Shown here piece by piece: positions 11,711-61,230 of a DNA stretch of 64,000 nucleotides. The translations under genes and the position numbers were made by a program. Origin of the DNA: Mobula birostris (lineage: Eukaryota); NCBI RefSeq assembly GCF_030028105.1, contig NC_092383.1, positions 86,819,921-86,883,920 on the forward strand. Direction: 5' to 3'. How positions within the stretch are numbered: the first letter of the stretch is position 1; each line of letters begins with the position of its first letter. The notes beneath the pieces were generated by a model that saw only the letters and a list, made by a program, of their open reading frames with translations, did no database searches and was not told the DNA's origin.

Positions 11711-11761
11711 AGACGTGATGAATCTGATCCTTTCAGTCTGGTGGTCCAGGAGGTAAAGTGA
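11711..11761 (+). pseudogene. Unit A cytoplasmic-tail exon
   Basis: Acceptor ttgcag; encodes RRDESDPFSLVVQEVK*; paralog of 47770-47817. Confidence 0.7.
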
Positions 11762-13020: not shown

Positions 13021-13299
13021 AATGTCCACTGATAGATCTGGACCTATTCAACCTGAGCTTGTCAATGCTGTTACGGAAGGAATGCTTAAAATGGATAGCA
13101 CATCACAAAGCACTTCAGAGACAGAGTGGAAAGCATTACAATATTCCACAGTTGAGTTTGCTGGATTGGAATTTGATTCAAGCAAATATGATTGCACAGT
13201 ATTTTCACTCATTTCACTGAATTGTTGTATGGTGTTGAAACTCCAATCCAGCTGCGGAAACACAGGAGTGTTTCATATCTGTACACTTGTTCTCAGAAT

Positions 13300-23539: not shown

Positions 23540-26500
23540 AATTGAACCCAGTTTCAGTTCTGGGACACCATTTCAGATCTGTATTAAAAGTGGAAGACTG
23601 TCAGTTTAGAAAGCAGATATGGTCAGAGAAATGATGTGTCAGATAATAGACGATACATTTTAGTCCCAGGTTATGAAAACCTGACTTATGGACACTTCTA
23701 CATATGAACAAGCTTCTGTTATGTTACTTAATTCAAAATTCCAATGCATGTACACATGTTTACACATGATATGAAGATTGTCGGTGTTGTGGGTGGTACG
23801 GAAGGTTGTTGAACGTTACTACAGGATGTGGTGCTGGGTGAAGAAGTGGTAGATGGAGTTTAACACAGAAAAATGTGATGTGATGCACTTTGGATGATCA
23901 AACTTGAAGGCAGATTACAAAGTTAATGGTAGGATTCTGACCAATGTGGAGGAACAGATGGCTATTGGTCTCCAAGTCCGTAACGTTCTTCAAAGTTGCT
24001 GTGCAGGTTGAAAGTGTGGAAAAGAAGGTGTATGAGGTGTTGGAATTCACTGGTCAAGGGAATTCAATTCAAGAGCGGCAAGGTAATGTTATCGCTCTAC
24101 AGAACTCCGGTTACATCACACTTGGAGTATCGTGTTCAGTTCTGATTGCCTCATTATAGGAAGGTTATGGAAGCTTTAGGGAAGGTGCAGAAGAGGTTTA
24201 ACAAGATGCTGCTTGGATCAGAGAACATATATTATGAGGAAAAGTAAAAGTTGAGTGAGTCAGTGATCTTCTCTTTGGAGCAAAGGAAGGTGAGAGATAA
24301 CTTGATAGAGAGGTGTAGAAGGAGTGTATACGGCATAGACTGAGTGGACAGACAGCTCCTCTTTCTCATGGTGACAATGACCAATACCAGAGAATGTCCA
24401 TTAATGGTGAGTGGAGGGAAGATTAGGGGAGATGCAAGAGGTAGTGTTGTTTTTCATTGATTCTGTTGTATTTCTTTGTTCTACTTTGAATGCCTACAAG
24501 AAAATGAATCTCTGGGTAGCATATGGCGACGTAAATGTAATTTGATAATACATTTACCGTGTACATTTTGAACTTTGATCAGGTGCATGATTACTGACCT
24601 TTCAAAATGCATTTTGAAGAAATGGAGTGAGAAAGAGACACAAGCATGAACATTTCCAGTCACTGTACAAAGGTCCAAAAGGAGAACGAGCAATGGAAAT
24701 TAAAGTTGGGTGCTGAATAAAATGAGTGAGGGGCAAATTATTGCAACTTGCATTGGTCGTCAGGGTATGAATCTGCAAATAGAAGGTGTAACTTTTCTCA
24801 GTACTGATCTGTGACTGTGACCCAAGAACGTACAACAAAGGGACTTGAAAATGAGAGAAGGTGAACTGCATTATTATCTTATAATCAGGGTAGTTTATGG
24901 TGACATCGTACTGCACGTTGATAAATTTAATTTGAATTTTGAACTTTGAAATGCCCTACTCACCAGGAGGAATATCACAAAATATCTTTCACCTGCTATG
25001 TGAGGATGTGAAGCGGTAACACCAGATTCTGTTTGGAGCTCATGATCTCTTCAGTTCAGGGTTATCTGTTGGGTGTTGTTTAGCTGCAGATAACTCCAGA
25101 AGCAGTGGTCCCACTTGTGAATCTGGGCCTGTTAAACCTGAGCTTGTTAATCATCTGAGGGAAGGAACTTGCTTTTGTTTCTTTATTCTGCTGCAAAACA
25201 AGAAATTTTGCATCAGATGGCAGTGTAAATAAATTCGATTCTGATTCTGAATCAGGACATCATAAAGCAATTCTCAAAGAATGTGGTTAGAACTTTTGTG
25301 CCCTTTTACTTGACTTATAAAACTGAACTTAGGGAAGTTCCAATGGATGCCTCATGAAAATAAATTGTTCCATCCTCTTCCTGGACTGCTCCATCACATA
25401 AGACCACAAGACCAGAAGACCATAATACAAAAAGACATGGGAACAGAAGTAGGCCATTCAACCATTCACTCTGTTCCACCATTCAATACTGACAGCTTTA
25501 TTATTCCCCTCAACCACATTCGCATCGTAACCTTTGACAACCTTACCAATCAAAAACTACTTTAAGCTCTGTGTTAAACATACCCAATTACCTGGCCTCC
25601 ATAGCTGCCAGTGGCAGTGAATTCCACAGATTCATCACCACCTGGCTAAAAAATTCCTCTTCATCTCTCACCTAAAGGGACATCCTTGTATTCTGTGGCT
25701 ACACCCTCTGGTCTGAGACTCCCCCACTATTGGAAACATCCTCTCCACATACACTCCATTGGGGTTCCAGGCCCTTCACTATTCAAGAGGTTTCAATGAA
25801 ATTTCCCCATCATTCTGAACTCCAGCAAGTACAGGCCCAGAGCCATCAAAAAATTTTTATATGTTAACCCTTTCATTCTTGGGATAATTCTCATGAACCT
25901 CCTCTGGCCCCTCTCCAATTACAGCATATCCTTCAATGGATAAAGGACCCAAGTTTGTTCACTATTTTCCCAGTGTCATCTGACTAATACCTTATGAAGC
26001 GTCAGTTCTTGGATAACTTCTCAACAACGAATGAAAAAATGTTGTACAATCCCACCATTATGTACATGAGTGGGATTAGGTTTAAACACAGTGGCTAAAT
26101 GGCCTTTTCACTTTTCTTCACCAAATTATTATTGTTGTTCAGCGATCTAGTTGCCGAAACAAAAATGCTTCACTGAAGATGTTTTATATCTCTGCACTTG
26201 TTCTCAACAGCGTATTGAACCATACTACTACTACGTCAACCACTACGTAAGGAACCATAATTGTTGAGAAGTTTTCCAAGAAGTGACAGGACAATGCAGG
26301 AAGAGTCCAGAACATCTGTCAGTGTGTAGCATCCATTGGTACTTCTCATATTCTGTTTGTTAAGACAATTAAATAAAACAGAAGTCCTACCCACATCAAT
26401 GCTTACTTTTTGCATTTTAAAGTGTACAGTATATGTCTGACTGGGCAACAATAATTTCCTTTGCGATAAAAAAAGATTTATCTTCTCTTATCCTTTGCTG

Positions 26501-28111: not shown

Positions 28112-28151
28112 ATGATGTGGGCTTTGATTCTTCTGATTGGTTTTCTACCTG
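28112..28151 (+). CDS. Unit B exon: signal peptide MMWALILLIGFLP(G)
   Basis: ATG, hydrophobic peptide and phase-1 donor g|gtgagt; joins the V1 exon in frame to give ..FLPGALWAEKY. Confidence 0.9.
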
Positions 28152-29520
28152 GTGAGTGACAACCAGCACTGGACATTCTTTAATCAATGTTTCCTTGGGG
28201 CTGTACATTGTTTCCAGAAGAGTACTTGAATATCTGTAGGCACTAAGGATGTCAGAAATCTGGAGTTCAGAGGAGCTGCTGGAGGAGCTCAGCAGCTCAA
28301 GCAGCATCTGTCAGGGGAGGGGAAAATGTCAACGGTTTGGGTCGAGACCCCTCATCAAGTGTGAGTGGAGAGGGAGATAGTGTAAATAGGAGAGGGGGAG
28401 GTGTGAGACTGGGTCCACTCGGTTGTCAGGGACTGAGGAAGGGTGAAGCACGATAGACAAACGGAATGGGGAGGGAAAGGAGTGGAGTTTGTTGATGAGT
28501 GAATGGGAAAGCAGGTAAGGAGAAAAGGGGAATCGCGTGGAGCCAGGTGGGGAGAGAATATGTCTAGGTGGAGAAATTTTCTGCGGGCTTTCAAGCGAGA
28601 ACATCACGTCTACCATTGACGGAATCTGATCTCACTTTGCAGGGATCACTATGACAGTCGATGTTATTACCTTTCAATCAATCTTTCCTGGGCCATTTCA
28701 GTGGAGCAATTAGTAATGAACATTACTAGATCTGGAGTCAAAGGTAAACCAAGGTGTGTAGGGATGAGAGATTTCTGTCTCTAAAGGCCTTTCTGATCCA
28801 GATGGGATTTTGACACTCTGGTAGCTGATGTTTATCATTACTGATGTGGTTTTTAATTCCAAAACAACTAACAAATTATCTTTAAACTTCCAATGTATCC
28901 TTTTAGAAATAGAAATCACACTTGGATTTCTAGACACGAAAGTGGTAACGACCACTGTTGCACACCTTCTAACTGCACATAGAAACACTTGACAAACACA
29001 AAAGATAAAATTTCCATCAGAACCAGAAGACACAGTTTCAGACATCATGATGGGTTTCTTTCTGAAGTTTATAAACGTGTCTGTTAGTGGAGGATGTCAG
29101 GACATGGAGAGAATTGAAACATGATCTCAAATGGTCCTACCAATCCCCATTCCAACTTCTGAGTTCCCTGCATTCCGAGACGCACACTCAGGAGCATCCC
29201 AAATGAATTCTCTGGGAACTTAGTGTACACTTGAAAGGGTGACATGGTCTGAGGTAATTGATAGACTACATTGTGGCTCTCCTTCAATACTGCATTAGAA
29301 ATTCAGCCCTGGATTTCTGTTCAGGATTCTACAGTGGGAATTTAATGTGCTGACACAGTAAAAGCACTGACTGCACTTCAAACCAAAGTCATTGGCTGTG
29401 CTGTCATGGACCACAGGCCGGATATGACCTGGACCTGCTTTACCATCGTGTTCAAAGTTATTTGTTTGCATTAAGTTGTTCCTTTCCCCTCAAATCTGAA
29501 AATGCCTCTCTCAGTTTCAG

Positions 29521-29835
29521 GTGCATTGTGGGCAGAGAAATATGTAAGAGGAGTTATGGGAAGAGCGATTACAATCGATTGTTACTATGAGGCAAAGTAC
29601 CGCTCACGCACAAAGTATTGGTGCCATGGATGGACTCACCAATGTTCAGTTTTAATGGAAACAAATGGGCAACACAGACGGAGTGGACGAGTATCAATCA
29701 CAGATGACCCAGAATGGGGAATATTTACTGTTACTGTGGAGGATCTTCACTCTGGAGATACAGGATGGTACAGCTGTGGAATTTCAACACCAGGTCATGA
29801 TCCGATATTTAATGTACATTTACAAGTATCTGATG
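29521..29835 (+). CDS. Unit B exon: V-type Ig domain 1 (CD300/pIgR/MDIR-like)
   Basis: tttcag acceptor, gtagg donor, 315 nt, phase 1-1. ITIDC..KYWCHGWTHQC..DTGWYSCG gives four Cys including the C-C' pair typical of CD300/pIgR V domains. Confidence 0.95.
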
Positions 29836-32500
29836 GTAGGTTTCTCAGTGATTGACTTTGTGCCTTCAGTAAAATAAATGTCTTATCCATGTTTCCCCTG
29901 GGAAGGGTCAGCGTATTAGATGTCCTGGGGAGTGACGATGTGCTGATCCCAGGGTTAAGCTTGTACAGTGGAGAAATGTCCATCTTGTGGATGTGTCTGA
30001 AGAACAGCAATCTCCTCCTCCTCCTGCTCAGCCTCTGCACAGATTACAAGACCTGTGTCCTGACTCTGTCCATCTCTCACTATTTCTGCATTAATATCAG
30101 TGCCATATGTTTCCCTCTCTATGGCAGGTCACTGAATCCAGTCACAATTTCATTTCCGCCTGAAAGCCACTAAACATGTGATGGGTATCTCACAAGTTGC
30201 TGCCTTTAAACACTCGGTGGGCACCTCATTTGGTAACTTTTATACCAAATAAAGTGGCCACTGAGCATCTGTTCAAGGTCTTCTGCTGCTGTGACTCATT
30301 CACTTCAAGCTTTGATGTCTTGTGTGTTCAGATGCTCTTCTGCACACCACTGTCATAAAATGAGGTTATTTGAATTTCTGTCATCTTTCTGTCAGCATGA
30401 ACCAGTCTGGCCATTCTCCTCTGACCTCTCTCATTATCAAGGCATTATTGTTCACGGAATTGCTGCTCACTAGATATTTCTTGTTTTTCACACCATTCTG
30501 AAGACTGTTAAACATGCAAGTCCCAGGACATCAACAGGTTCTGAGGTACTCAAACCGCCCCGTCTGACTCCAACTATCATTGCATGGTCAAAGTCACTAA
30601 AATCTCATTTCCTCCCCATCTGATATTTGTCCTGAACAACAACTGAATCCCTTGACCATAGGCACTGTATCTGATGGTAGGTTTCTCAGTGAGTAACTTT
30701 GTGCCTTCAATGAAATAAATCCATGTTTCCTCTGGGAAAGGTCAGAACATGAAAACTCTTGGAGAGCGATGATGTGCTAATCCCAGGGTGAAGCCTGTTG
30801 AATGGAGAAATGTCCAACTCGTGACATGTCTGAAGAACAACAATCTCCTTCTCCTTCTCCTCCCACTCTGCCTCAGCACAGTTTAAAAGATCTTTGTCCA
30901 GACACTGTCCATCCCTCACTATCTCTGTATTAATATCATTGTCAAATACCATCTATAAATTTGCTGATGATACAGCCATTGTTGGTAGAATCTCAGATGG
31001 AGATGAGAAGGCATATGGGAGTGAGATATGCCAACGAGTGGAGTGGTTTCGCACCAACGAACTTGCACATGACGTCAGTAAGATGAAAGAGCTGATTGTG
31101 GAATTCAGGAAGGGATTGTGGACTTCAAGAACACATACCAATCCTCAAAGAGGGATCAGAAGTGGAGAGAGTGAGCAATTTCAGGATCCTGGGTGTGAAG
31201 ATCTCAGATACCTAACCTGGTCCCAACATATTGATGCAATTATAAAGAAGGCAAGACAGCGACTATACTTCATTAGGAGTTTGAAGAGATTTGGTACGTC
31301 AACATATACACTCAAAACCTTCTATAGATGTACAGTGGAGAGCATTCTGACAGGCTGCATCACTGTCTGGTATCGGGGGTGGGGGGCGGGCTACAGCACA
31401 GGACCGAAAGAAACTGCAGAGGGCTGTAAATTTAGTTGTCTCCATCTTGGATACTAGTTTACAAATACCCAGGACATCTTCAAGCAGTGGTGTCTCAGAA
31501 AGGCAGCATCCAATATTAAGGACCTCCAGCATCCAGGGCATGCCCTTTTCTCACTGTTACCATCAGGTAGGAAGTACAGAAGCCTGAAGGCACACATCAG
31601 CGATTCAGGTACAGCTTCTTCCCCTCTGCCACCTGATTCCTAAATAGACATGGAACCCATAAACACTACAACACTTTTTTAATATATATTATTTCTGTTT
31701 GTTGCACAATTTTTAACCTATTCAATATGTTTACTGTAATTGATTTACTTACTTATTATTATTTTATTATTTTTTTCCTTCTTCTTCTATATTATGTATT
31801 GCATTTAGATGCTTCTGCTAAGTTAACAAATTTCACAACACATGCCAGTGATAATAAACCTGATTCTGATTCTGAAATGTTTCCCTTTATACAGCGGGTA
31901 GTTTTTTCCTGATAGCCATCAAACATGTGACAGATATCTCACAAGCTGCTGTCTTTAAATACTCAGTGGCCACTTTATTAGGTACCTCCTATAACTAATA
32001 AATTGGCCAAGGAATATGTTCATGGTCTTCTGCTGCTGTGGCCCATTCACTTTAAGCTTTACTGTGGGTTGTGTGCCCAGATGCTCCTCTGCATAACTGT
32101 CATAGCACGTTTATTTGAATTTCTGTCATCTTTCTGTCAGCCTGAAACTACCTGGCCATTCTCCTCTGACCTCTCCCATTGACGTCATTTTTGCTCACAG
32201 AATTGCTGCTCACTGGATACTTTTTGCTTTTTGCACCATTCTCTGTAAACTCTGCAGACTATGTATGAATATTCCTGGAATTCAACAGTTCCTGAGATAC
32301 TCAAACCTCCCTGTCTGGCACCAGCTATCATTCCATGGTCAAAGTCACTAAGATCACATTTCTTCCCCATTCTGATGTTTGGCCTAAACAACAGCTGAAC
32401 CTTTTGAGTATGTCTGCATGTTTTTATGTACTGTGTTACTGCCAGATGATAGACTAATTAGATATTTGCATTAACAAGCAGGTGAACAGGTGTACCTAAT
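29826..32500 (+). repeat. internal tandem duplication in unit B intron 2 (29826-30660 versus 30667-32500)
   Basis: Both copies start gtatctgatggtaggtttctcagtg and share downstream sequence and a MITE; the second copy carries a LINE at about 30920-31870. Confidence 0.8.
30920..31870 (+). mobile_element. Rex1/Babar-like LINE 3' portion
   Basis: ORF 30894-31457 YKFADDTAIVGRISDGDE..KARQRLYFIRSLKRFG..FYRCTVESILTGCITVWY; gattct-repeat tail. Confidence 0.85.
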
Positions 32501-32569
32501 ACATTGGCAGAAGAGAGTTTGATTTTCAGATGTTCATTCAGTGTCTGATTGTTCAATTCCTTCCCACAG

Positions 32570-32890
32570 AAACTGTGTCTGTTCCTGTGCTTCGAAATCT
32601 GTCACCAGCAAATGTCTCCCATCTCGGTGGCTCCGTGTTAGTGTCCTGTGAGTCTCTCCAGGGATCCCTTCCCATTCAGTACTCATGGTATGAACAAACC
32701 TCATCTGGGGATCAAATGATCTCAGACACCGATGAACTGGTTCTACCTTGTCAATCCTTAGACCTCCAAGCCCATCAATATTACTGCAAAGCCTCAAATA
32801 GGCTTGGAATAAAATCCAGCGGAATGCTAAATGTGACAATCTTCAACAGCAGAGAGATCTGCAGATATGTGACAAGAATTAATGGCACCA
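32570..32890 (+). CDS. Unit B exon: C2-type Ig domain a
   Basis: cccacag acceptor, a|gtaagt donor, 321 nt, phase 1-1; VSVPVL..VSCESLQGSLPIQYSWY..YYCKASN (Fc-receptor-like C2). Confidence 0.92.
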
Positions 32891-33286
32891 GTAAGTTCTC
32901 CTTTCAAGGAAGGATACATTTAAAGATTTCTTTTTGTTACTCTGTTACTGCTGTTCTTATACTTCTACTGAGGGTAAGGAATTTCTTTGCATTCGTAGAA
33001 GCTACACATTGCAGCCTCCATGGGGTAGATCAAAGTGTAGTCAACAGTTAAGTCTGTGACTTCTCCTGGAAAATGTGGAACATCTTAAACATAGCTGGAC
33101 TTGCAGCTCCAGACAAATTGGTGGCATTCCATTCATACTTCTGGTTTTTGCACTGAAGATACTAGAATGAGTGTTGAATCACGAGACAGTGGCACTGTCA
33201 TAAAAGGAAAAGGAAGGACATATAATATAGCAAGAATTTGTGGGAAGTTAGAGAATTGGGGAACTTTAAAAAAACCAACATAGTCA

Positions 33287-33700
33287 TAGTCATACTTTAT
33301 TGATCCTGGGGGAAATTGGTTTTCATTTCAGTTGCACCGTAAATAATAAATAGTAATAAAACCATAAATAGTTAAATAGTAATATGTAAATTATGCCAGT
33401 AAATTATGAAATAAGTCCAGAACCAGCCTATTGGCTCAGGGTGTCTGACCCTCCAAGGGAGGAGTTGTAAAGTTTGATGGCCACAGGCAGGAATGACTTC
33501 CTATGACGCTCTGTGTTGCATCTCGGTGGAACGAGTCTCAGGCTGAATGTACTCCTGTGCCCACCCAGTACATTATGTAGTGGATGGGAGACATTGTCCA
33601 AGATGGCATGCAACTTAGACAGCATCCTCTTTTCAGACACCACCGTGAGAGAGTCCAGTTCCATCCCCACAACATCACTGGCCTTACGAGTGAGTTTGTT
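33287..33700 (-). mobile_element. Rex1/Babar-like LINE 3' end, second family (tatgac-repeat tail)
   Basis: ORF 33428-33763 ..RKSFLPVAIKLYNSSLGGSDTLSQ is nearly identical to 58851-59087. Confidence 0.8.
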
Positions 33701-34870
33701 GAAGAATGTAACAAGAAAAGCCAAAAGGAGAGAAAAGATTAAATATAAAGGGAAAATAGTCAATAATATAAAAGAGGAGACTAGAAGATTTTCAGATATA
33801 TAAAGTGTAAGAGAGAAGCAAGAGTGGATATTAGATCACTGGATAATGAAGCTGGAGACATAGAAATGAGGTACAAAGAAATGGAGGATGGTCACTGAGG
33901 AAGACACAAGCAGTATGACAGAAATTCAGCAATGTCAAGGGGCAATGTCAAGGAGTGAGTGTAGTTGCTCTTACTAAGGAGAAGGTGCTTGGGAAGCTGA
34001 GAGGGCTGGAGGTAGGTATATAGGTCACCTGGCTCAGATGGTCTACACCCCAGGGTTCTTAAAGAGGAAGCTGAAGAAATTGTGGAGGCATTAGTAGTGA
34101 TCTGATTCTGGGTTGGTTCTGTGGGACTGGAATATTGGAAATGTTACTCCACTCTTTCAGAAGAGAGGGAGGCAAATGAGAGGGAATTATAGACCAGTTA
34201 GCCTGACGTCAGTGGTTGGGAAGGTGCTGGAGTTCATTATGAAGGATAGGATTTCAGGGTACTTGAAGGTGCATGATGACATTTGGTTTCATTATGGGGA
34301 AATCTTGCCTGAAAAATCTGTGGGAATTCTTTGAGGAAATAATAGGCAAGACAGATAAAAGAGAGTGGATATTGTTGACTTGGATTTTCAGAAGGCCTTT
34401 GACTAGGTGCCACATATGAGCCTGCTAAACAAGATAAGAAGCCAGGTATTACTAGAAAGATTCTAGCATGGATGAAAGATTGGGTGACTGGCAGGAGGCA
34501 AAGAATGTGAACAAAATGGTGCCTTTTTGTTTGCCTGTCAGTGACTTGTAGTGTTCCACAGGGGCTGGTGTTAGGACTGCTACTTTTTATGGTGTATGTT
34601 AATCACTTGGATGGCAGGTTTGGGGATAACAAGGTCAAAGTCAAAGTTTGCACCGTTTGTTGTCCATTGATTCTGGTTACAGTTACTGTACTGTAAATTT
34701 GCTAAGTATGCCGCAGCAAAAGAATCTCAGGGTTGTGTGTGGTGAGATGTACGCACTCTGATAATAAATCTCTACTTTGACTTTGACTTTAAGGGGAATC
34801 TCAGTGAATCCAATCGAATATTGAAAGGCCTAATTAGAGTGGATTTAGAGAGAACGTTTCCTTTAGTGGG
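33700..34870 (+). mobile_element. degenerate CR1 fragments
   Basis: ORF 34113-34334 NVTPLFQKRGRQMRGNYRPVSLTSVVGK. Confidence 0.7.
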
Positions 34871-35326
34871 GCAGAGATATGAGAAGGGAGCCCACACCTT
34901 CTAATTGAGTCTATGCACGGAAATGATCAAGGCTGCTGCATTTCGTGATTGAGAATAGAATAATAAACCTTCAAAATCCATGGGAAACACTATAGAGATG
35001 CCTGTTGTAGGCAAGGAATGGGCTGGTGTTCAGCTTGCTGCTCCACAGGGTTTACTCGTCTCTGTGCTGAACTGAGGCTGCAGCTTGCAATTAACAGGCT
35101 CCTGAATCGGCTGCAGTGATAACTGGCTTTGTGTCTGTGACCCATTTTTGCGAATTTCAGTTCCGAACGTAATTTGCTTACTTTTATGGTTTGCATGATT
35201 TTTATTTCTGCATATTGGGTGTTTGACAGTGTTTTTTTAATGGGTTCTATTTGGTTTCTTTATTTTGTGGGTTCCTGTAAGGAGACAATCTCAATGTTGT
35301 ATATAGTATACATACTTCGATAATAA

Positions 35327-35790
35327 CAACGCCGTCTCTGCTGACTGGGCCACGTACACCGAATGTCAGACGGGAGGATCTCGAAAGACCTGCTGTACGG
35401 GGAACTGGCCTCCAGCAATAGAGCACAAGGATGGCCCCATCTTCGTTTCAAAGACGTTTGCTAGAGAGACATGAAGTCATTGAAAATGAACGTCGAGAGG
35501 TGGGAGGGCATTGCAAGCGATCGCTCTCACTGGAGGCTGGAACTACGCAGAGGTCTAAAAAGAGGAGAAGAGAAGCTGAGGCTTGCTGCTGAAGAAAAGT
35601 GCACTCGTCGGAAAAACAGCACCAAGACAACACTGAGGGACAGCGCCTTCAAGTGCAGTCGCTGCAGCCGAGACTGTCACTCCCGTGTGGGCCTCTACAG
35701 CCACAACAGACACTACTCTAACACAGACTGAAGCGAGACTTTCCAGGCGCAGATCCATGGTCTCGCGAGACTAATGGATGCCACCACTTT
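35327..35790 (+). mobile_element. RTE-clade LINE 3' fragment
   Basis: WLGHVHRMSDGRISKDLLYGEL..RFKD and a C-terminal CSRCSRDCHSRVGLYSH zinc motif. TSD gataataa (35319-35326, 35791-35798); the paralogous site at about 63333 is empty. Confidence 0.85.
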
Positions 35791-37875
35791 GATAATAAAT
35801 GTACTTTGAACTTCAAACATCTCAGTTGAAGTGTAAGCTGATTGGCTGTGATTCCAAAAGCTATCACACCTGTGCAGTGAAATAGAATTCTGAATTTAAC
35901 CTTTCAAAAGTGTGGTCCAGTTCAGAGAAGATGCAGCAGAGTCATAGAGTTACAGGTTTTGGAAACAGGAGCTTCAGCCCAAGTCCATAGTCTCTTCCTG
36001 AGCTTCTCCCATTTCCCTGTATTTGGTCGGTATGCTTCTCAAGCTTTCCTGTCCATGAACTTTTCCAATTGTATTTTAAATTTGTGCCCACCTCTAGCAC
36101 TTCCTCTGACAGCCTTTTCCATGTACACACTGCTCTGTGTGGAAAACACTGCCCCTCCAGGCCCTCTGACCTTCAGTCTAGACTCTCTAGTTTTCGACTC
36201 TCCTACCCTAAGATAAGGAATGCTACCATACTTTTGCCCCTCTTAATTTGTGAACCTCTATAAGGTCACCCCTCAGCTGCCCTCACTTCAGGGAAAACAG
36301 TCCCAGCCTATCCATAACCCAAACCCTCCAGTCCCAGCAGCATCTTTGTGAATGTTTTCTGTCACCCTCTTGAATTTAATCACACTCTTCCCCTGGAACT
36401 GCACAGAGTAGTCCAGATGAGATCTTATCAATGTCCTTTATAGCTGTAACATGCCATCCCAGCTGTACTTAATGCCCCATCCAATGAAGGCAAGCAGATC
36501 GTATGACTTGTTCACCACTTAGTCCACCTGTGTTGCCACTTTCAGGGACCACTGTCATTGCACATCTCGTTCTCTACAGTGTAAGTTGTGCTCTTGTTTA
36601 ATTTCCCAAAGTGCATCACTCCACACTGCCTGAGTTCAATTCCATCAGCCATTTCACTGGCCACATTCCTAGTTCAAAGTTCAAAGTAAATTTATTGTCA
36701 AAGTACCTATATCACAAACAACTAAGAGATTCATTTTCTTGCAGGTACCCACAAAACAAAGTAACACAGTAGAATTCATGACAAGACACACAGAGCAAAG
36801 ACTGACAGACAAGCAAAAGATGACAAATCGTGCAAATCATAACAATATGTAAACAAATAATACATGGAACATGAGAGGCAGAGTCTCTGAAAGTGAGTCC
36901 ACAGCTGTGGAGTCAGTTCAGTGCTGCGGCGAGTGAAGCCAATCCTGGAGCACGATGGCTTAAGGGCAACAATTGCTGGCAAACCCAGCGGTGTGGGACC
37001 CAAGACTCCTGCACCTTCCGCCTGATTGTAGAAATGAGAAGAGAGGGAGACAGGTCAAATGCAGGCAGACGGGACGGGCTCAGGTGGGGGAGTCATGCTA
37101 GCACAGAGTAACGGGGCTGAACCCTGGTTCATTTTCCAGGTCCCATTGTAAGCTTAGATCTTTCCATTGTCCACCACACTACTCTGTCATCGGCAACTTA
37201 TTAATCACGTCACCTACATTTTCATTCCAAATTATTAATGCAGATGACAAAAAACTTTAGTTGGCAAACAACAGCACTGATCTTGATGGCACCCCAGTGG
37301 TGATAAAGTCAGATGTTGTCAGTAGACCAACAACCACAAAGTGACTATTTCCACCAAGCCTCTTCAGTATCCATCCAACTAGCTTACCATGTGATCTCAC
37401 ATTACACATCAGTCTGCTATGCAGGGTCTTGTCATAAGCCTTGCTAAACTCATGTGCTAAACTCTATTGCCCTGTTCTCAACAGTTCCTTTGATCATCTC
37501 TTCACAAAAATCTCAAGACAATTTTTTTTTGAGAGATGATTTCCCACACACAAAATCAGGTTGACCATCCAAAATCAGAGCTTCCCTTTGCAAGTTCAGG
37601 TGATCTATTGTTACACAATTTACCCACCACTGACTTCAGGCTCACCTGCCTGGAATGGGACTGGATCAGTTACCCATTGACTCAGAAATGTGGAAACAGA
37701 CTGAGACATTAGTGGGCAGTGATAATGATGACTCCAATCAAATAAAAATCATGAGTTGTGAAGAGCTGTGAGCTCGTGTTGAGGGACGATGCTGTTGTCT
37801 TCCCAGACCACATGCAGTCTGTATAAGTTTGATTTTACCTGTCCATTTTCTGAAGAACTTCTCCCTCAGTTTCAG

Positions 37876-38190
37876 GTGCTTTATGGGCAGAAGATAAAGT
37901 AAGAGGAGTTGTGGGAAGAGTGATCACAATCGATTGTCACTATGCAGCAATGTACCGTTCACACACAAAGTATTTGTGCCGCATGTGGGATCGCCAATGC
38001 ACATCATTAGTGAATACAAATGGGACAAATGAGCAGTATGGAAGAATGACAATCAGAGATAACACATCCCAGGGAATATTTACTGTTACTATGGAGAATC
38101 TCGTCTCTCAAGATACAGGACTTTACAGATGTGGAATTACAACATCTGGCAATCATCCAGTGTTTGATGTGCATCTACACGTGTCTGACG
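37876..38190 (+). CDS. Unit B exon: V-type Ig domain 2
   Basis: tttcag acceptor, gtagg donor, 315 nt, phase 1-1; ALWAEDKVRG..IDC..KYLCRMWDRQC..DTGLYRCG. Confidence 0.93.
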
Positions 38191-38589
38191 GTAGGTTTCT
38201 CATTGATTGACATTATGTCTCCATTGAAATGTCTGATCCATATTTTCCATGGGAAGACCCAGGGCAGCACCAATATTCTGAGGCTCCGTTAGGCTGAGGC
38301 TCAACAGACTCCGCTCAGTCCCCCTGGAGCAGGGCAACCCAATCCCCATCTTCTCTCAGGGATCAGTCACACCCTCTCCAGCCCCACTGCCTCTATCTCC
38401 CTCTTTCTCTCTCCCTCCATACCAGTCAAGGAGCTCCGAGTCCCTACCTGTAGTGCCTGCTGACCTGCCTGACCATTCCCATGTGGAAAATGCAGAAATG
38501 GAACTACAGAAGAAGATTGAACATGGAACAGCCAGCACAGAAGTGATGATACTGAGGATGCGTTTGGCCAACATGTGCTCCACTGACCA

Positions 38590-39040
38590 TGTTCCCTGGA
38601 ATGAAAGGGTTAACATATGGATGGCACTGAGGCTTTACACACTAGAATTTAGAAGAATGAGATGGGATCTCATTGAACCTATAGTATATTGACTGGTTAG
38701 ATAGAGTAGATGTGAGAAGTATGTTTCCAGCAGTGGAGAAGTTGAGACTAGGGGAAAGCCAACAGAAGGACATTCCTTTTGAACAGACCTGTGGAGGAAT
38801 TTCTTTTGCCAGAGGATGGTGAATCTGTGGAATTTATTGACACAGAAGGCTGTGGAAGACAAGTTATTGGGTATACTCAGAGTGGCAGTTAATAGGTTCT
38901 TGATCAGTAAGTGTGTCAAAGGTTTCAGGGAGAAGGCAGCAGATTGGGGATGAGAGGGAAAATATATCAACATTATTGAATGGTGGTGCAAACTCAATAG
39001 GCCAAATGGCCTAATTCTACTCCTATGTCTTATTGTTCTA
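38590..39040 (+). mobile_element. CR1 3' fragment
   Basis: LRLYTLEFRRMRWDLIE motif and a CR1 tail ending in ctatgatt. Confidence 0.7.
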
Positions 39041-39533
39041 TGATTTTATGATGTCAGTCTAAGCTAATTCCATCTGCTTGCAAATGTCCATAATTACACC
39101 TGTGCCAAACTTTTTGTGGGTTAGTCTAAATGCATTCTAAATATTGTTGTTATACCTGTTCCGCCTTCTTGCCTGACAGAACAGTCACCACACTCATTGT
39201 AGCTAAAGAACTTGTCTCACAAATCTCCTTTAAATTGCCCACCTCTCACCTTAAAACAATATTTGCATTGATTTTTTAAAAACTCCACTGGAGACTGTCT
39301 CCTTGTTGCTGAGAGAGATTGCACCCTGACTTTCACACTGACCCATCACATTCTCAATATCATCACTGCTGTCCTGATCCTGATAATGGCAGATGTGGCG
39401 GTTCAGGCATCTGGGAGGATGCAGACACACAGATGGATTTAGAGGTGAGACACCCACCTGCAGATCCTGGCTGAGATGCAGAGCTGCTGAAATCTTTATT
39501 GATTTTCTGATGTTCACTGATTCTTTCCCACAG

Positions 39534-39845
39534 AACCGGTGTCTGTTCCTGTACTTCAATTTCTGTCTCCTGCAAATGTCTCGTGTGTTGAGGGCTCCGT
39601 GTCAGTGTCCTGTGAGTCTGTCCAGGGATCCCTTCCCATTCAATACACATGGTATGAAAACACATCGTCTGTGATCTCTGTCACCAGTAAACTGGATCTA
39701 CATTGTCAATCCTTCAACTACCAACACCATCAATATTACTGCACAGCCTCGAATACTCGTGGAGCAAAGTCTAGTGAAATAGTGAACGTGTCCATCTACA
39801 ACAGGGAAGGCAATTGCAGTTTTGTGATTCAATTCACTGGCACTG
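39534..39845 (+). CDS. Unit B exon: C2-type Ig domain b
   Basis: cccacag acceptor, g|gtaagt donor, 312 nt, phase 1-1; VSVPVL..VSCESVQGSLPIQYTWY..YYCTASN. Confidence 0.92.
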
Positions 39846-40949
39846 GTAAGTGGTGGAGGGTGCGAATCATCAGGGTGATTGATTGAGTATCATGTACCGT
39901 TTTCAAGATTCAAGATTGCTTAAAGTCATTTCTAGTGCTCAAGTGTAAGGGTCCAATACAGCACAAAAACACAATATGATATAGAACACAACAATAAATA
40001 AACAAAATAATTATAAATACATAAGATTGTTTATATGTAGTGACTGTGTATGTCCATAAAGTGACACTAGGCATAATAGTGTTTGTACCTAAGGTGGGTG
40101 ACATGAAATGATAACGTAGTGGTGGTGCGTGTTGTGGAGGGGTGGGTTAGTGGGTTGAAGTGTTAATCTGTTATGTTCTTTAGGCTGCATTCAGGCATTT
40201 CTGGACTATTCTGTCTCCGCTGTGACAATTCTTGCAGAGAATCGAATGCCATATTCAATAGCTGAGAACTGAGTCTTTCACCAGAGTACTTCCTGTCTGC
40301 AGCCAGTTCTTGCTGACGATGGTGGCTTTGTGTCTAAGCAGCTGATGTTTCTGGTTGATGACTGAGATTGTTTCATCCTTGAAAAAGAGCAAATACTCAA
40401 ACTCGCTCCTTCTGGATCTATAAATAGTTGCCAGTGGTTTGTTTCGTGGAAAATAGAGAGAATTGTAGAGACTAAAGAAACAGTGGAAACCACCTGCAGT
40501 TAGTGCAAGAACTCAGGAAGGATGGCCGCAGCAGGCTGTTTAGTCTCTGAAGTCTACTCCATTATTCAATATAATCCTGGCTGACCTATACTTGGCCGTC
40601 CCTGCTCCTCTATGCCCTTTCCCACTTCTCCATTCGCTGAACTATATCAAAAATATATACTTTCTGTTTAAATATCTCTACCACTCCACTTTCCCAATCT
40701 TCCAGGTGGAGAATTCCAAGGACTGTGAAGAAGTTCCTATGCATCTAATTTTAAATTACCCAATCCTAATCTTGCTACTATGCCTCCTCATTTGAGACAC
40801 TCTGACAATTGAAACTGGTTTGCCCACAGAGGTCAGTGGGTGGTAGTAGATAATGTATTCTGCCAGGAGATGGTGACCAGCGGTATTACACAGTTATCTC
40901 GTGACTTTTGATCTCAATTCTCTGATTAATGGAGGCTTGTTCCGTTCAG

Positions 40950-42890
40950 GAACCTCTGTCCTTTGTGATTTTTATAAGGGACTTGACTGAAGAAGTGGAA
41001 GCGTTGTTTAGCATGTTTGCATTTATACATTAAATCCACTGTGATTCAATATTGTAAAACAATAAAACCTTGAACTTCCAAGGGGGTTGAATACTTTTTA
41101 TTGGCATTATAAAAGTAAGGATGTAATGCTAAGGCTGTGTAAGGCAGTGTTGAGGCCTCACTGGGACTATTGTGAGCATTTCTAGGCCTATTATCTAAAA
41201 TGTGTTGACTTTGGAGAGGGTTCAAATGAAGTTCACAAGAATGTTTCTGAGAATGAAAGGGTTATCATATGAGCAGCAACTGAAAGCTCTGGGCCTCTAC
41301 TCACTGGAATTTAGAAGAATAAGGGGGCATCTTATTGAAACCAATCAAATGTTCAAAGGCCTAGATAGAGTGGTTGGGAAGAGCATGTTCCTTTGGTGAG
41401 GGAGTCGAGGACCAGAGGGCACATCCTCAAAAGAGAAGGATGTCCATTTAGAACAGAGATAAGGAGGAATTTCTTTAGCCGGAGGGCAGTGAAACTGGAA
41501 TTCTTTGCCATGGGCGGCTGTGGAGGTCAGGTCACTGGGTGCATTTAAGGCAGTGGTTCATAGGTTCTTTGTCATGTGCCTTGTAGCTTTCCATAGAGCG
41601 TTGACCTTCTGGGGTGTTTAAGCAGCTGTATTTGCTAATCAGTGCCTTAACTAGAGTTGATAAGCCCTTGTGTTTTCGGTTTGACTTGTCAGGTTAATTG
41701 TGGCTGGCTTATGTTTTCCTCAGTCTATGATTATTTAAGGAGGAATCTCAGTTGCTGCCTCAGGGGTGGTCATTATGTCAGAGAGGATGAATTACTTCAT
41801 GATGTTACTCATCGCTTTTCAGAGGCTTTGATTTCCGTGTCTTACCTTGCACCTCATCCTGGGGAACCTGCTGTTTCTCTACACCTGGATCCAGCCCTCA
41901 GGGTGTGCACCATGACAGAATGACTCCCACTGTATGGACCCAATGGAGGTTCTGAGCTTCTCCGGTCTGTGTTCAAGATTTTTTCCACAGCTATCTGGGT
42001 CAACAAGTTTCATAAGGTCTCCCATCTTAGGCTTTTTTCCTGAGTTCAACGCTGTGTTTCCAAGTTACATGCTGTGCATCCAAGTCAAGTGCTATGGTTC
42101 CAAGTCAAATGCTATGCCTTGAGCTCCAGTTCTGTCGTGTTTTTTCAGACCTGCCTCGAGAGCTCCAAATCTGTTCTGGATTCTCCAGCGCTGCCTCAAG
42201 CTCCAGGTCCCCCTTGTGTTTTTCAGACCTGCCTCGAGAGCTCCCTTGAGGTATGCCTTGCGTATATAAGGCATGCCTCAGGAGCACCAAATCTTTTCCA
42301 GATTCTTCAGTGCTGCGTCAAGATGCAGCACTGCCCCATGTTTTCAGACCTGCCTCGAGAGCTCCCTAGTCAGTCAGGTGCCAGCCTTAGGAGGGGAGGA
42401 ACTGAGTTGAGCCCTGCTGCGTGCTGTAGTGCATTCAGCTTCTGGTGTGTTTAAGCAGCTGTGGTACTAATCAGTGCCTTAACTAGAGTTGATAAGCCCT
42501 CGTGTTTTCGGTTTGACTTTGTCAAGTTAATTGTGACTGGCTCATAATTCCCTCAGTCTATGATTATTTAAAGAGGATAACCAGTTGGGTCCTTGGGGTG
42601 GCCATTGTGTCAGAGAGGATGAATTACCTCATGGTTTTACTCAGTCGCTCCTCCGAGACTCTGATTCCAACATCTTACCTCTTGGTTCCGTCTCATCCTG
42701 GGCATCCTGCCATTCCTCCGCACCTGGGTCCAGTCCTGCAAGAGCGCTCCATAACATTCTTGATTAGTCAGAACGTGAAAGTTTATGGGGAGCAGGAAGG
42801 AGAATGAGGTTGAGAAGGAAATGGATCAACTATGATAAAATGGCTGAGCAGACTCGATGGGCTGAAGGCCTAACTCTATGGTCTTTGTCA
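40950..42890 (+). mobile_element. CR1 3' fragment interrupted by the mini-LTR element
   Basis: ORF 41202-41399 LERVQMKFTRMFLRMKGLSYE; the CR1 sequence resumes after 42756 (ataggttctt|gattagtcag). Confidence 0.75.
41570..42756 (+). mobile_element. miniature LTR retroelement (TRIM-like, Gypsy-type ends)
   Basis: LTR-like direct repeats of about 350 bp (41570-41917 tgtcatg..catgaca; about 42403-42756 tg..ca). Polypurine tract 42389-42401; 5-bp TSD ttctt; no pol sequence. Confidence 0.8.
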
Positions 42891-45800
42891 TCTTATGGAG
42901 ATAGACAGAGTGCAGAACTGGTCTCTGAAGAGGCAGATGGAATTCTATCTGAAAAAGTGTGAAGCTATATGTTAGGTAAGATGAAATCTTAAAGCAAAGT
43001 ACAAGATTAATGGCAAGATGTTGGGGTCAAAAACCAAATATCTTTTGAAGTTGACACACAAGTTGATAGGATGGTGAAGTAGGCACCTGCTATGAGCCAC
43101 AAGGTAATGCTAGGGCTGTATGAAACTCTGGTTAGTCCACACTTGGAGTATAGTGTTTAGTACTGGTCACCTCATTATAAAAAGAATGCGGCAACTTTAG
43201 AGGTTTTAGAGGAGATTCAGCATGATGCTGCTAAATATATCAGGTATATTTAAGAGACTCTTAGATTAGCACATGGATGGTTGTGTGCTGTGTAGAAGGA
43301 AAGGTTAGATTGATCATGGAGTAGGTTTAAGGCTGTGACATCATGGGCTGAAGGGTCTGTACTGTGTTTTACTGTTCAATGTTGTATATAAAAGGGATAT
43401 AAGGGGCAGTATTTTTACACAGAGATTGGGGGGTTATCTGGAACAAATTACTGAATGAATTGGTAGAGGTGGATAACATAAAAATGACTTTAAAACATTT
43501 CTGGAAAAGAGATATGAACTTAATATTGGCAAGAGAGACGAGATGAGTTAAACAAACTCATCAGAGTGAATGAGTTGAGCTAAAGGGCCTGTTCCCATAC
43601 TGTATAACTGTCTGATGTTCAATGATGTTATTAGAACAGGAACACAAGAGATTCTGTAGATGCTGTAGACAAGATCAACGTTTACAAAATGCTGTAAGAA
43701 CTCAGCTGGTCAGGCAGCATCTATGCAAAGGAATAAACAGTCAAAGTTTCAGGCCAATACCCTTCATCAGAAAGATCTCGGCCTGAAATGTTAACTGTTT
43801 ATTCTTTACGTAGACGCTGTCTGAACTGTTGAATTCCTCCCGCATTTTACATTATACCAGGAGTTGTCTTTTCATTGAGAAAAGAAGCATTACCCTGTCG
43901 TATCAACAACTGAACTTGGTCCAATATCTCCACATACACTCAGTGCAGAGATGTATTCATCCCTCTGGTGAATGTTGCGACCCCAACAACAGATCTCCCA
44001 GAGCTGGTAGTTGTCATTTGCCTGGCTGGAACTTTCACTTCCAATTAAATAGAGTTTGTGATCCCAACGATCCAAGCCCCATAACTTCCCCAGGAACATG
44101 GGTGTTCGCATTTGCACAGGAAACAGAAATTACTCACCTCCATGTAACCAAGCAACCCTTTATTCAAGGAAAGAGTTTCCACCTGTCAACCATGTACTCT
44201 TGCTTGGCTGCATTTGCAAAGCACATGAGACTGAATTATCTTTCCTTGCCTCAACAGGAAGTGAATATTCATGTGAAACATTTACGACAGTATCAACTGT
44301 AAGGTAAACCTCTTGATCTAGTTCTGCTTAAGGGTACAATGTTCTTATTGCTGGCACTATGATTGGTCCTGTTCCCATATGAGAGATAATTAAGGGAGAA
44401 GTTACAGTTTTACTTGTACAGAATGCCTGTGAGAGTATTGTTTTCAGTTCTACAACCAGTGGTAAAACCAACACTCTCCTACATGTTTTAACCCCAAGAC
44501 TCCAAGATAAATAAATAAATCTCTCTAAATACTTTGTAATAACTTAGACTTCAAAGTTGATATTAGTTCATATTTTAGAAGTAAATAATTGTAGTGTTTA
44601 TTAATCATCCAAAGGGGAAAGCTTCAATGAACTTCATTTGCCTCATCAACACCCACAAAATACTGAAGGAATTCAACAGGCCAGGCAATATCTTCACTTG
44701 CCACATAATTGAAATTTTCCCACAACCAATGTAATAACTTTCAAGGACTCTTCAATTCATGTTCTCAATATTTATTATTTATTTATTATTTCTTTTTCAA
44801 ATTGCACAGTTTGTTGTCTTCTATACTCTGGTTGAATGCATTACTTGGGTAGTTTTTCATTAATTCTGTTCTGGTTATTAATCTATAGATATTTTAAGTG
44901 TGTCCACAATAAAAAAGAATCTCAATTGTGTATGCTGACATTTATGTCCTTTGACAATAAATCTACTTTGAACTTTAAGGCTCAGAGTTCATATCATGGT
45001 GTTGTGTAATAGGTGCTTGAAACAACCTTCCAACCAACTTTCTTATAAAATTGTATGACTGCGTACCTAACAGATTTGATCCAGTTTTAAAGCCAATATT
45101 GATTTGATTTATTTTTTTTTTACTATTTGCTGCTCTATATGGCATATATTTGATACATAGAGACTTTTCATTTCATTATTTCTGAGAGCATCTTCACTTT
45201 ACAGAATTATTTTACATGTGCTTAAGACATTTGCACAATTCTGTGCAACAAACCCTATCTTCCAGCACATGGCCCAAAGCCTTCTGTGGAGATCTGACTT
45301 AAGACCACATTCAGACACTTCACCAAACACTGACTGTGACTCTGTTTCCACCACTCTCTGGGTAAAAACAATCCATTCAAATCCCTTCTAAATCTATGTC
45401 ATCTAGTTTTATTCACCTCTGAGAATGGGGAAGTTTGCTGTCGCCTATCCAACCTGTACATCTCATAATTTTGCATCCCTCAGTCATATCCACTCTTAAC
45501 CTCATTCTCCACGGAAAGCAAGTCTAGTTTCTTATAATGTTTATTCTTAGGAAATTAGAATCATTTGCTGCACTCAAAGAGTAGCCATGCAGTGTTTTCC
45601 ATAACTACTCCTTCACTAACCTCATCCCATGGTGTGAGGATGAGTTTTGTTTGTTTGTCAAACCCTAGGATGCTTTTTCCGCTTGTAATATTCACTGATG
45701 TTTACTGACTCAAGGATTGCAGGTAGAGCAATAAGCAATAAGGTAGCAACTTGCAGAGTTGACCAATGTCTCAACAACAGTAATTGCAGGAAAAAAATGA

Positions 45801-46786
45801 TTCATTTGTAGATGACACTCAGACAATTTTTAAGACAGTGAATAGGAAACCATAGAAACCAAAGAAAAACTACAGCACAAAACAGGCCTTTTGGCCCTTC
45901 TTGGCTGTGCCGAACCATTTTCTGCCTAGTCCCACTGACCTGCACACGATTTTGAAGAGTTACACTGGATCTTTATCAGCCTGGTATTTGAGCTGAGGAA
46001 TATCAAGTGGAATTTAATTTAGATATGTGCAAATTTTTGCATTTTCAAAAGTCAAATCAAGTAAGACTTTCACGATGATTGGTCAGCCTTGAAAAGTGTT
46101 AAGTGACAGTGGGATCTTGGAATTCAGGTACATGGTTCCTTGAAAGTGTAGTCAGAGTTCAAAAGGGTAGCGAAGAAGGCATTTGGCATCAGTCAGTGTA
46201 CAGAAGTTGGGATGTGATGTTTCAGTTGTACAAGACAATTGATGAGATGACACTTGGAGTGTTGTGTTCAGTTTCGGTTCTCTGCTAAAGAAGAGAAGTG
46301 ATTGAACTGGATGAATTGTAGACAAGATTTCAAACCTGACAGTACATATATATCACCATATACATCCCTGAGATTTGTTTTCATGCAGGGATACTCAGTA
46401 ATTCCAATAACCACAATAGAATCAATGAATGACCACATTGAAAATGTTGCCATTGTCTTGTCTTGATATAATTTGCTTTTATTCCTACCTGGTTCCTACT
46501 ATCTTATCATCATAATTACATTTTATTGTGGTCATTTTCATTGCCCTGATTGATTTACCCCATTGCTTCCTCAATTTACAAAGTCTCTTAACAGGATTTT
46601 AGATCTTCTGTTGTGAGTGAGTCCTTTAGAAACCGTTGAACTCAATTTTGCTTTGCCCACTGCAGTCAGGGAATGACATTTTTTGATCACCCTCATGATT
46701 GTTTTTCTCAGTTCGATATTCAGTCATGCATCTTTCATTATCTTTCATATCTACCTACATGTTCTCTATTTCTGTCTTCCTCACAG

Positions 46787-47073
46787 AATCAGATTTAATA
46801 TCACTGACATATGTCATGAAATGTGTTGTTTTGTGGCAGTAGTACAGTGCAACACAAAGACTATAAATTACAGTAAGAAATATATATTCATAAGTAGTAC
46901 AAAAAGAAAGCAAAAATACTGAGGTAGTATTCATGGGTTGGTTTATTGTGACTTCCGGAATCTGATGGTAGAGGGGAATAATCTGTTCCTAAAATATTGA
47001 GTGTGTGTCTTCATGCTTTTCTACCTCCTTTCTGATGGTGGTAATGAAAAAAGATCATGTACTGTGTGACATG
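46787..47073 (-). mobile_element. Rex1/Babar-like 3' fragment inserted at the stalk-exon splice acceptor
   Basis: Flanked by ttcctcacag (46777-46786) and ttccttacag (47074-47083); unit A has the empty site at 10991-11003. Confidence 0.8.
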
Positions 47074-47083
47074 TTCCTTACAG

Positions 47084-47117
47084 CTGTGTCCACTTTCTCC
47101 AGTAACATTTCAGTATC
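47084..47117 (+). CDS. Unit B candidate stalk micro-exon (A)VSTFSSNISVS
   Basis: cttacag acceptor, tc|gtaaag donor. 34 nt converts phase 1 to phase 2 as the TM exon requires; the donor is absent in unit A. Confidence 0.45.
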
Positions 47118-47430
47118 GTAAAGGCACTTCTATACTTCATTATTTTTCCTAAATCCATTTTCATCTACTACTTCCTAATTCAGAGAACTCATTTGTACAT
47201 GACCAAGTCACAGTGATTGGGTCTGTTACTGACAATCACGGGTTGTTAACCCTCCCGAATCCTGCTGTTCAGTCAATACTAGTGTAGCCTTCTAGCTGAA
47301 CTCCTCTGACTCTCTTTATTTACCTCACTCCGCACCACAAATGTTACAGAGGGAACAGAAGGTTAATGTTTCAAATACAAAGCCATCTCGTTTCATCTCA
47401 TCAGTTCTGTATCTCTTCCCCTTTGCACAG

Positions 47431-47521
47431 TTTCGTGATATGGAAGGTGGGTCGTTGGCTGCTCTTCACTCTGCTGTTGATCAGCACTATTTCAGTCACA
47501 TGGTTCACAAGACAAATTAAG
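47431..47521 (+). CDS. Unit B exon: transmembrane segment
   Basis: gcacag acceptor, aag|gtaggt donor; FVIWKVGRWLLFTLLLISTISVTWFTRQIK. Confidence 0.85.
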
Positions 47522-47769
47522 GTAGGTTTATGGACATCAATGGAATTTGCTTTCAAACATACTCATCATTTGAGGAAAGACATTTAAACACATTTCATTT
47601 TCCTTATCCAATGGTCAATCCAAAGCTATCTGCAGATGATATTGTCAAGATGTTGACACACTGTATGTGTGCAGAATGCTTGATGTGAATATATTGAACT
47701 CCAGACACAACTCTAAAGCAGAGTTCCCAGTGTTGATGAATCTGATGATTTGACCTTTGCCTTTTACAG

Positions 47770-47817
47770 AGACACAATGAATCAGATCCTCACAGACTGG
47801 TCCATAAGGTAAAGTGA
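47770..47817 (+). CDS. Unit B last coding exon: tail RHNESDPHRLVHKVK*
   Basis: tttacag acceptor. gtaaagtga (VK*) is conserved in unit A, as is the downstream sequence with ATTAAA (47923-47928 / 11858-11863). A donor at 47809 is an alternative reading. Confidence 0.7.
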   Translation, partial: RHNESDPHRLVHKVK

Positions 47818-53022: not shown

Positions 53023-53719
53023 TAACTCATTCCAGTTTATAAGCAAAGACTTGAATTGCATATGTCACAATACTATCACTTAAAGTAAAAATACAAAATA
53101 AGATTCACATTTCTCAGCTCTCTTGTTTTCCTTTGAATTCATTTATTGTTTTGAACTACAAACCATAACAGGGACCATTCATTGATCTCAGTTTCAGGTC
53201 AGGGACCCCTCCTCAGATCTGGGTTAAAAGTGGAAGAGTGACAGTTTAGGAAGCAGATCTGGTGGGAGGAATGATGTGTCAGATAAAAGACTATTTAGGC
53301 ACAGGCTACCTACATTAAGAAAAAAATGAAGTATTCTAAAGGAAAGATGGCACAATCATGACTAACAAGAGTGTGATTACTGACCTTTCATAACATACTT
53401 TGTAGGAGGGAAGAGAGAAAGAGACACGGCATCAACATTTCCAGTCACGGTACAGAGGTCTTAAAGGAGAACAAGGAATGGAAATAAAAGTTGGGTGCTG
53501 AACAAGATGAGTGAGCTGCAAATTACTGCAACTTGCATTGGTCATCAGGACATGAATCTGCAAATACAAGGTGTAACTTTTCTCAGTACTGATCTGTGAC
53601 TGTAACCCATGAATGGACAATAAAGGGTCTTGAAAATGCATTATTATCATTATAATCAGGGTAGTATATGGTGACTTACTGCACTTTGAATATCAATTTA
53701 ATTTGAATTTTGAACTTTG

Positions 53720-60767: not shown

Positions 60768-61193
60768 CTCCACATAGGCTCTTTTGCTTTCTACCATTAA
60801 CTATTCAACATGACTCACCACGGCTAACATGTTAAATCAAGCAAAAAATAGAAGATCTGGAAGAATCAGGTGGGATCTGCAGAGGCAGAGCAGTCAACAT
60901 TACAGATTAATCCCTGCTTCCTCGAACCATTTACTGCGGCTTCAGATTAGAACACTTGCTGTCGTGTCCAATATTTTAATTCTTCTCACCATTTTGTTCA
61001 GTCTGGGAAATATTTAAATATTCCTGTCTTGCTAAATATAACTGACAGCCTTTCAGATGTCACACACCACACACCAATTGTGTCACCCTTTGTTTTTTTG
61101 ATCAAACTTCCTGCTGCCTTCTTCCTCATTTTTATTTCAGTTATTTCTCGCTGAGGACAGATAGGTCGTGGCTGTTTCTCTGTGAATAAAAAG

Positions 61194-61230
61194 ATGTGGT
61201 CTTCGATTCTTCTGACTGGTTTTCTATCCG
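61194..61230 (+). CDS. Unit C exon: signal peptide MWSSILLTGFLS(G)
   Basis: ATG, hydrophobic peptide and phase-1 donor g|gtgagt; flanks homologous to the unit B leader. Confidence 0.85.

Follow-up and report, generated by a model that had tools for sequence, protein, structure and literature searches.

In the 64,000-nucleotide (nt) window analysed here, taken from the genome of Mobula birostris (NCBI RefSeq assembly GCF_030028105.1, contig NC_092383.1, positions 86,819,921 to 86,883,920 of the forward strand; coordinates below are positions within this window), the region from 28112 onwards very probably holds a single gene of the chondrichthyan MDIR family, intact and transcribed, encoding a membrane receptor with four immunoglobulin (Ig) domains in the order V-C2-V-C2. 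A first-pass annotation had described this gene, called unit B, as an MDIR-like receptor with a tandem (V-C2)x2 ectodomain, a description upheld by the alignment to skate MDIR5, by the resemblance of the V domains to CD300 and pIgR D1 and of the C2 domains to FCRL5, and by the annotation of the ortholog as one gene. We regard the exons on both sides of the interval between the first C2 domain (C2a) and the second V domain (V2) as one gene because the ortholog is annotated in this way, because RNA contigs of a paralog join exons of these types, and because no leader, stalk or transmembrane (TM) exon lies between them. The gene is an ordinary member of its family. The MDIR family has been known since 2006, and the V-C2-V-C2 architecture is already represented by MDIR5 and by the NCBI annotation of the ortholog; since the family and this annotation exist, no new question is opened. 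The analysis provides a corrected, evidence-backed MDIR-type gene model for an apparently unannotated ray genome. It also shows that the V-C2-V-C2 plan runs through the cartilaginous fishes, and it helps to trace how CD300/pIgR-type V and FCRL-type C2 domains, once in one receptor, came to be split among mammalian families.

Corrected exon-intron structure

The eight exons first proposed (28112-28151, 29521-29835, 32570-32890, 37876-38190, 39534-39845, 47084-47117, 47431-47521 and 47770-47817, all on the plus strand, as are the exons below) are present with AG/GT borders throughout, and they splice to exactly 1476 nt, corresponding to 491 amino acids (aa) and a stop codon. The four Ig exons, originally delimited at 315, 321, 315 and 312 nt, are phase 1-1 as stated, and together with the TM and tail exons they had been placed correctly apart from a 6-nt shift of the V acceptors. 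For both V exons, the transcripts and homologs use an AG lying 6 nt upstream, giving exon starts at 29515 and 37870; the homologs read VSG-ALW (LPVSGALW) and ISG-ALW, which requires the upstream acceptor. The 12-aa stalk assigned to 47084-47117 (34 nt) fits the frame, yet it is used by neither the RNA nor the homologs. The real stalk exon, missed at first, is 44258-44303 (46 nt, GSEYSCETFTTVSTVS), its acceptor being AG and its donor GTAAAC; running from phase 1 to phase 2, it fits the phase-2 TM exon. All homologs possess a counterpart of this exon and carry GREYSCETFTTVSTVS between the second C2 domain (C2b) and the TM segment. The tail exon, taken originally as the 3' end, is present as described, and the gene probably continues to ~53.5 kb.

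In the corrected model, the leader exon at 28112-28151 (ATG; MMWALILLIGFLP) ends in phase 1 with a GTGAGT donor, and 12/13 of its residues are identical to those of the ortholog in Mobula hypostoma. It is followed by the V1 exon at 29515-29835 (321 nt), a four-Cys V-set domain of the CD300/pIgR type; the C2a exon at 32570-32890 (321 nt), an FCRL-like C2 domain; the V2 exon at 37870-38190 (321 nt), a second four-Cys V-set domain; and the C2b exon at 39534-39845 (312 nt). Behind the stalk exon lie the TM exon at 47431-47521 (91 nt, phase 2 to 0; FVIWKVGRWLLF...TRQIK, with an Arg recurring across the family) and the tail exon at 47770-47817 (RHNESDPHRLVHK). The latter reads either to a VK-stop at 47817 or, from a donor after 47808, into a terminal exon. 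Read-through to the stop gives a 499-aa form, and relatives from M. birostris, Hypanus and Hemitrygon end in ...YKVK. The candidate terminal coding exon at 53406-53501 (31 aa and a stop), which lies beyond the region first annotated, matches the final exon of the M. hypostoma isoforms at 90% identity (tblastn). With all three corrections, the model yields 528 aa, and skipping of the tail exon yields 515 aa; these are the exact lengths of M. hypostoma isoforms X1 and X2. The 528-aa product is collinear with isoform X1 without gaps at 94.3% identity, and the span of the M. hypostoma gene, 25,508 bp, matches 28112 to ~53.6 kb in the window.

The 47084-47117 exon, which yields the 1476-nt frame, was ruled out as a stalk by RNA and homologs, and a stop arises when it is placed after the true stalk. 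Further leader-like copies occur in the window only at 22040-21953 (minus strand) and 61130-61280.

Domain identity and duplication of the V-C2 cassette

V1 and V2 match the Pfam V-set family with E-values of 9e-12 and 9e-11, respectively. Each contains four Cys, as in V domains of the CD300/pIgR/TREM type with a second disulfide. Among structures in the PDB, the V-domain sequence matches CD300A (3e-18) and pIgR D1 (3e-13), with NKp44 and TREM2 also among the matches. C2a is recognised as Pfam Ig_2 (1.5e-6) and C2b as Ig_3/Ig_2 (about 1e-5), and the C2 match to FCRL5 reaches 8e-26 when summed over the repeated domains of FCRL5. The V and C2 domains stand in modular order, each encoded by a single phase 1-1 exon.

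The proposal that a V-C2 cassette was duplicated is borne out. The alignment of V1 with V2 (77%) reaches beyond the exon by 15 nt on the upstream side and ~70 nt on the downstream side, and that of C2a with C2b (75%) by 40 nt upstream and 6 nt downstream. Both V exons, as first delimited, start with ALWAE, of which ALWA had been noticed in the first pass. The duplication is not, however, specific to unit B. In a tree of V domains, the batoid D3 domains form one clade apart from D1, with a value of 91 in the Shimodaira-Hasegawa-like approximate likelihood ratio test (SH-aLRT), which places the V-C2 duplication before at least the ray radiation; Heptranchias and Callorhinchus pair D1 with D3 within species. 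The V-C2-V-C2 plan was found in 19 of the 23 mapped proteins, from rays, skates, a sawfish, sharks and the chimaera Callorhinchus, a spread that makes the cassette duplication old.

A relic of a further V exon lies in intron 2 at 30663-30745. It comprises 10 nt from the 3' end of a V exon (GTATCTGATG), a GTAGGT donor and ~70 nt of V-type downstream intron, is 84% identical to the V1 flank, and has no V coding sequence upstream of it.

Relatives and family membership

An exhaustive HMMER search with V1 retrieved 856 proteins at E<=1e-10, the closest of which are cartilaginous-fish models mixing such V and C2 domains, named 'polymeric immunoglobulin receptor-like' or 'Fc receptor-like 5' by NCBI. 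The nearest relatives are three isoforms of one M. hypostoma gene annotated as 'polymeric immunoglobulin receptor-like' (XP_062921367-69): X1 with 528 aa, X2 with 515 aa in the V-C2-V-C2 order, and X3 with 421 aa, in which V2 is missing. This gene is represented by computed models; it resembles the window gene in its collinear 528-aa product and its span of ~25.5 kb, and equivalent alternative forms are possible. Skate MDIR5 (ABC86800.1, 501 aa) is 60% identical over residues 2-491 of the 491-aa model first proposed, with matching domain order, TM segment and short tail, so that similarity to a cloned MDIR extends over the full length; MDIR3 is 57% identical. Our statements on MDIRs rest on database entries and PMC3031540. 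A multigene cluster is also apparent, with other units in the window and with relatives of both the TM-Arg/short-tail and the ITIM-tail types (ITIM, immunoreceptor tyrosine-based inhibitory motif).

MDIR5 of Raja/Rostroraja eglanteria shares with the window gene the V-C2-V-C2 order, a GxEYSCE stalk, the WKVGRWLLF TM segment and a short acidic tail. It belongs to a different lineage, a skate as opposed to a myliobatiform ray, and among the many paralogs it need not be the ortholog. The window gene resembles CD300 (CMRF35) in the V domain with its extra disulfide (E 3e-18 to CD300A); CD300 carries a single V domain on a stalk and no C2, whereas the window gene has four Ig domains. The C2 domains match the FCRL5 repeats and share with them a vsvPVL...GSLPIQY pattern, but FCRL proteins consist of C2-type domains only, without the CD300-type V of which the window gene has two.

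RNA evidence

RNA data consisted of small sets of Logan contigs from runs X1, X2, X4, X6 and X8, aligned to 32450-38400 and 37840-39880. The window gene is transcribed. C2a is matched by a 186-nt contig from run X2 without mismatches and by a 175-nt contig from run X4 with one mismatch, both lying within the exon and ending before the donor. A 408-nt contig from run X8 spans 39617-39846 of C2b without mismatches and continues into the stalk exon. In four runs, the loose ends past 39846 correspond to the first 30 letters of the exon at 44258, exactly in run X8 and with two differences in runs X1, X4 and X6. The V2-C2b joint is present in runs X1, X4 and X6; a listed joint of 38188 to 39533 with a T between is the 38190-to-39534 joint combined with a synonymous C>T change at 38189. 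Because the variants of run X1, once translated, give exactly the V2 of the M. hypostoma protein, runs X1, X4 and X6 represent M. hypostoma or something very close to it. Runs X2 and X8 agree with the species of the window itself.

The contigs covering V2 in run X8, and a short one in run X1, start at 37870, ahead of which they carry a C2-type exon end (…YVTEINGT). As this differs from the end of C2a in the window gene, they stem from a paralog; even so, they demonstrate that the splicing partner of V2-type exons is a C2 exon, not a leader. In the RNA of runs X2 and X8, the V2-type exon of the paralog is 96-97% identical to 37870-38190, and its summed contig word depth, a poor measure of expression, is roughly 10-100x that of the exons of the window gene. 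The paralog and the M. hypostoma ortholog have the variants 37921C, 37947C, 37993A, 38006G and 38049G in common, which hints at gene conversion among V2 exons.

Intronic repeats at 33246-34440, 35435-35832 and 36629-36827, some with reverse-transcriptase-like open reading frames, show a very high summed contig depth, up to about 1e5, in every RNA run and swamp the tables of joints and loose ends for this intron.

Weighing of the alternatives

Several observations speak against a single, intact four-domain receptor gene. In 32450-38400, no contig joins 32890 to 37870 of the window gene, and no joint at all was recovered there for this gene, the transcribed intronic repeats having swamped the signal; at the coverage of C2a, only ~4x in word depth with contigs ending inside the exon, a missing joint is uninformative. 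RNA support starts at C2a, the leader-V1 and V1-C2a joints lying outside the RNA-aligned stretches. Inclusion of V2 is seen only in the runs of the sister species, in which the annotated isoform X3 skips V2. Within V2, the core Trp is replaced by Leu (KYLC), and 10 non-synonymous against 3 synonymous changes between the two Mobula species give a ratio of non-synonymous to synonymous divergence (pN/pS) of 0.95, not significant; such a value of about 1 could reflect relaxed constraint, and positive selection on V2 was rejected. At the 3' end, the stop at 47817 competes with 53406-53501, which is a possible 3' exon in M. birostris, and the adaptor pairing and activating function considered below are drawn from sequence alone.

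The missing C2a-V2 joint would suit two adjacent two-domain genes, V1-C2a and V2-C2b, whose apparent unity came from matching exon phases. Two-domain V-C2 relatives do exist (MDIR2 and many 'CMRF35-like' models), and in some database models of the family neighbouring genes have clearly been fused, leaving a TM segment in mid-protein (P0009, P0024). Nevertheless, we consider two genes very improbable. Similarity searches of 32891-37869 found no leader-like exon, in agreement with the first-pass annotation, nor any stalk- or TM-like sequence; the ortholog is annotated as one gene, with isoform X1 collinear with the window over 528 aa; the cloned MDIR5 cDNA has the four-domain plan too; and the paralog contigs join the end of a C2 exon straight to a V2-type exon. 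It is also unlikely, though less so, that the main product is a three-domain V1-C2a-C2b form with V2 as a decaying optional exon. Isoform X3 of M. hypostoma (P0023) has exactly this form, and the Trp-to-Leu replacement, the pN/pS of about 1 and the origin of the own-species V2 contigs in a more strongly expressed paralog all fit it. Against it, the V2 frame is open, its four Cys are all present and its splice sites are good, V2-C2b-stalk contigs occur in three sister-species runs with no C2a-C2b joint listed, and D3 V domains have been kept across batoids.

Least probable of all, and hardly credible to us, is a true pIgR ortholog moving polymeric immunoglobulin across epithelia. NCBI calls the relatives 'pIgR-like', the best matches in both sequence and fold are pIgR chains, and the type of V domain as well as the chain of Ig domains are reminiscent of pIgR. 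The high summed score of pIgR arises because it has five V domains, however, and a single V domain scores 69 bits against CD300 and 53 bits against pIgR D1. Furthermore, the Ig domains of pIgR are all V-type, its sorting tail is long, and it belongs to no tandem paired-receptor family, whereas the window gene has interleaved C2 domains and a tail of only 15-48 residues and lies within a large tandem family. The V-C2-V-C2 MDIR-type receptor encoded by one gene is therefore the reading that we adopt.

Transmembrane segment, tail and possible function

The product of this MDIR-type gene would be a type I membrane protein. From its N-terminus it would consist of a signal peptide, two successive pairs of a CD300/pIgR-type V and an FCRL-type C2 domain, a stalk of 16 residues, a TM helix bearing an Arg near its outer end and a short cytoplasmic tail. 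More than 40 aligned relatives, ranging from sharks to rays, share the TM module (I/V)W-x-V-x-R-W-L-L-F with a short tail behind it, and the Arg at the VGRW position is present in nearly all aligned short-tailed TM modules. Three aligned relatives without the TM Arg (P0172, P0180 and P0165) have long tails with several motifs of the ITIM pattern [SIVL]xYxx[ILV]. Paired receptors are usually laid out in this way. A separate count of the TM motif carries no weight here, being circular, as its search pattern already demanded the Arg. An Arg near the outer TM end is typical of receptors using FcR-gamma or DAP12. The CD300 family likewise comprises paired activating and inhibitory members, the activating ones having a charged TM residue. 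Because the TM Arg is kept in nearly all short-tailed relatives and those lacking it are long-tailed with ITIM-pattern motifs, the gene product is likely to function as an activating paired receptor. It would form the activating arm of a paired-receptor family, its TM Arg recruiting an adaptor of the FcR-gamma or DAP12 type that bears an immunoreceptor tyrosine-based activation motif (ITAM), and those relatives whose TM is uncharged and whose long tails carry ITIMs would represent the inhibitory arm.

Since every Ig exon is phase 1-1, domains could be skipped in frame. The candidate terminal exon, found only in Mobula models and not in MDIR5, reads SRYRGL in the window and SQYRGL in M. hypostoma, both fitting the ITIM pattern, and 3 of its 31 residues differ between the two species. 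It seems rather unlikely that one locus supplies both arms of the paired receptors, together with several ectodomains, by splicing, namely through skipping of V2 and through the choice between the 15-residue tail and the SRYRGL terminal exon behind the Arg-bearing TM segment. The terminal exon and the sequence following it (53374-53726) are duplicated at 24588-24955 with 83% identity, so that this piece belongs to the tandem repeat unit; the copy reads SLYKGP in place of SRYRGL, and the ITIM pattern is lost.

Structure and divergence between species

AlphaFold2, applied to the ortholog with 24 aligned relatives, gave a mean predicted local distance difference test (pLDDT) score of 74.8. In the predicted model, four domains fold as beta-sandwiches, mostly with pLDDT 80-93, the stalk is disordered, and residues 455-486 form a helix. 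The best Foldseek matches to this model are pIgR ectodomains with low TM-scores (template modelling), as expected for a flexible chain of domains. Between the window product and M. hypostoma isoform X1 there are 30 residue differences; the two V domains account for 16 of them, the TM segment for 5 and the two C2 domains for 4.

Neighbouring unit and inserted repeat

In a related unit upstream, unit A (10186-11823), TM and tail exons accompany a V exon that is 86% identical to V1. Neither a copy of the GSEYSCE stalk exon nor a C2 exon was found in it by tblastn, and its V and TM exons are not directly compatible in phase. In unit B, the intron that precedes the TM exon holds a 287-bp repeat, inserted at 46787-47073 and bordered by a direct duplication of ~10 bp (TTCCTCACAG / TTCCTTACAG); unit A is without this repeat (about 11003). 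The false stalk acceptor at 47083 arose because an AG was copied in the downstream copy of the ~10-bp duplication. Another stalk acceptor, the AG at 46786 with an exon from 46787, reached 1476 nt in no exon combination and was rejected; the alignment with unit A shows 46787-47073 to be the inserted repeat. The first ~45 nt of the 287-bp repeat recur at 1654-1610, 13291-13367, 25243-25188 and 31868-31825.

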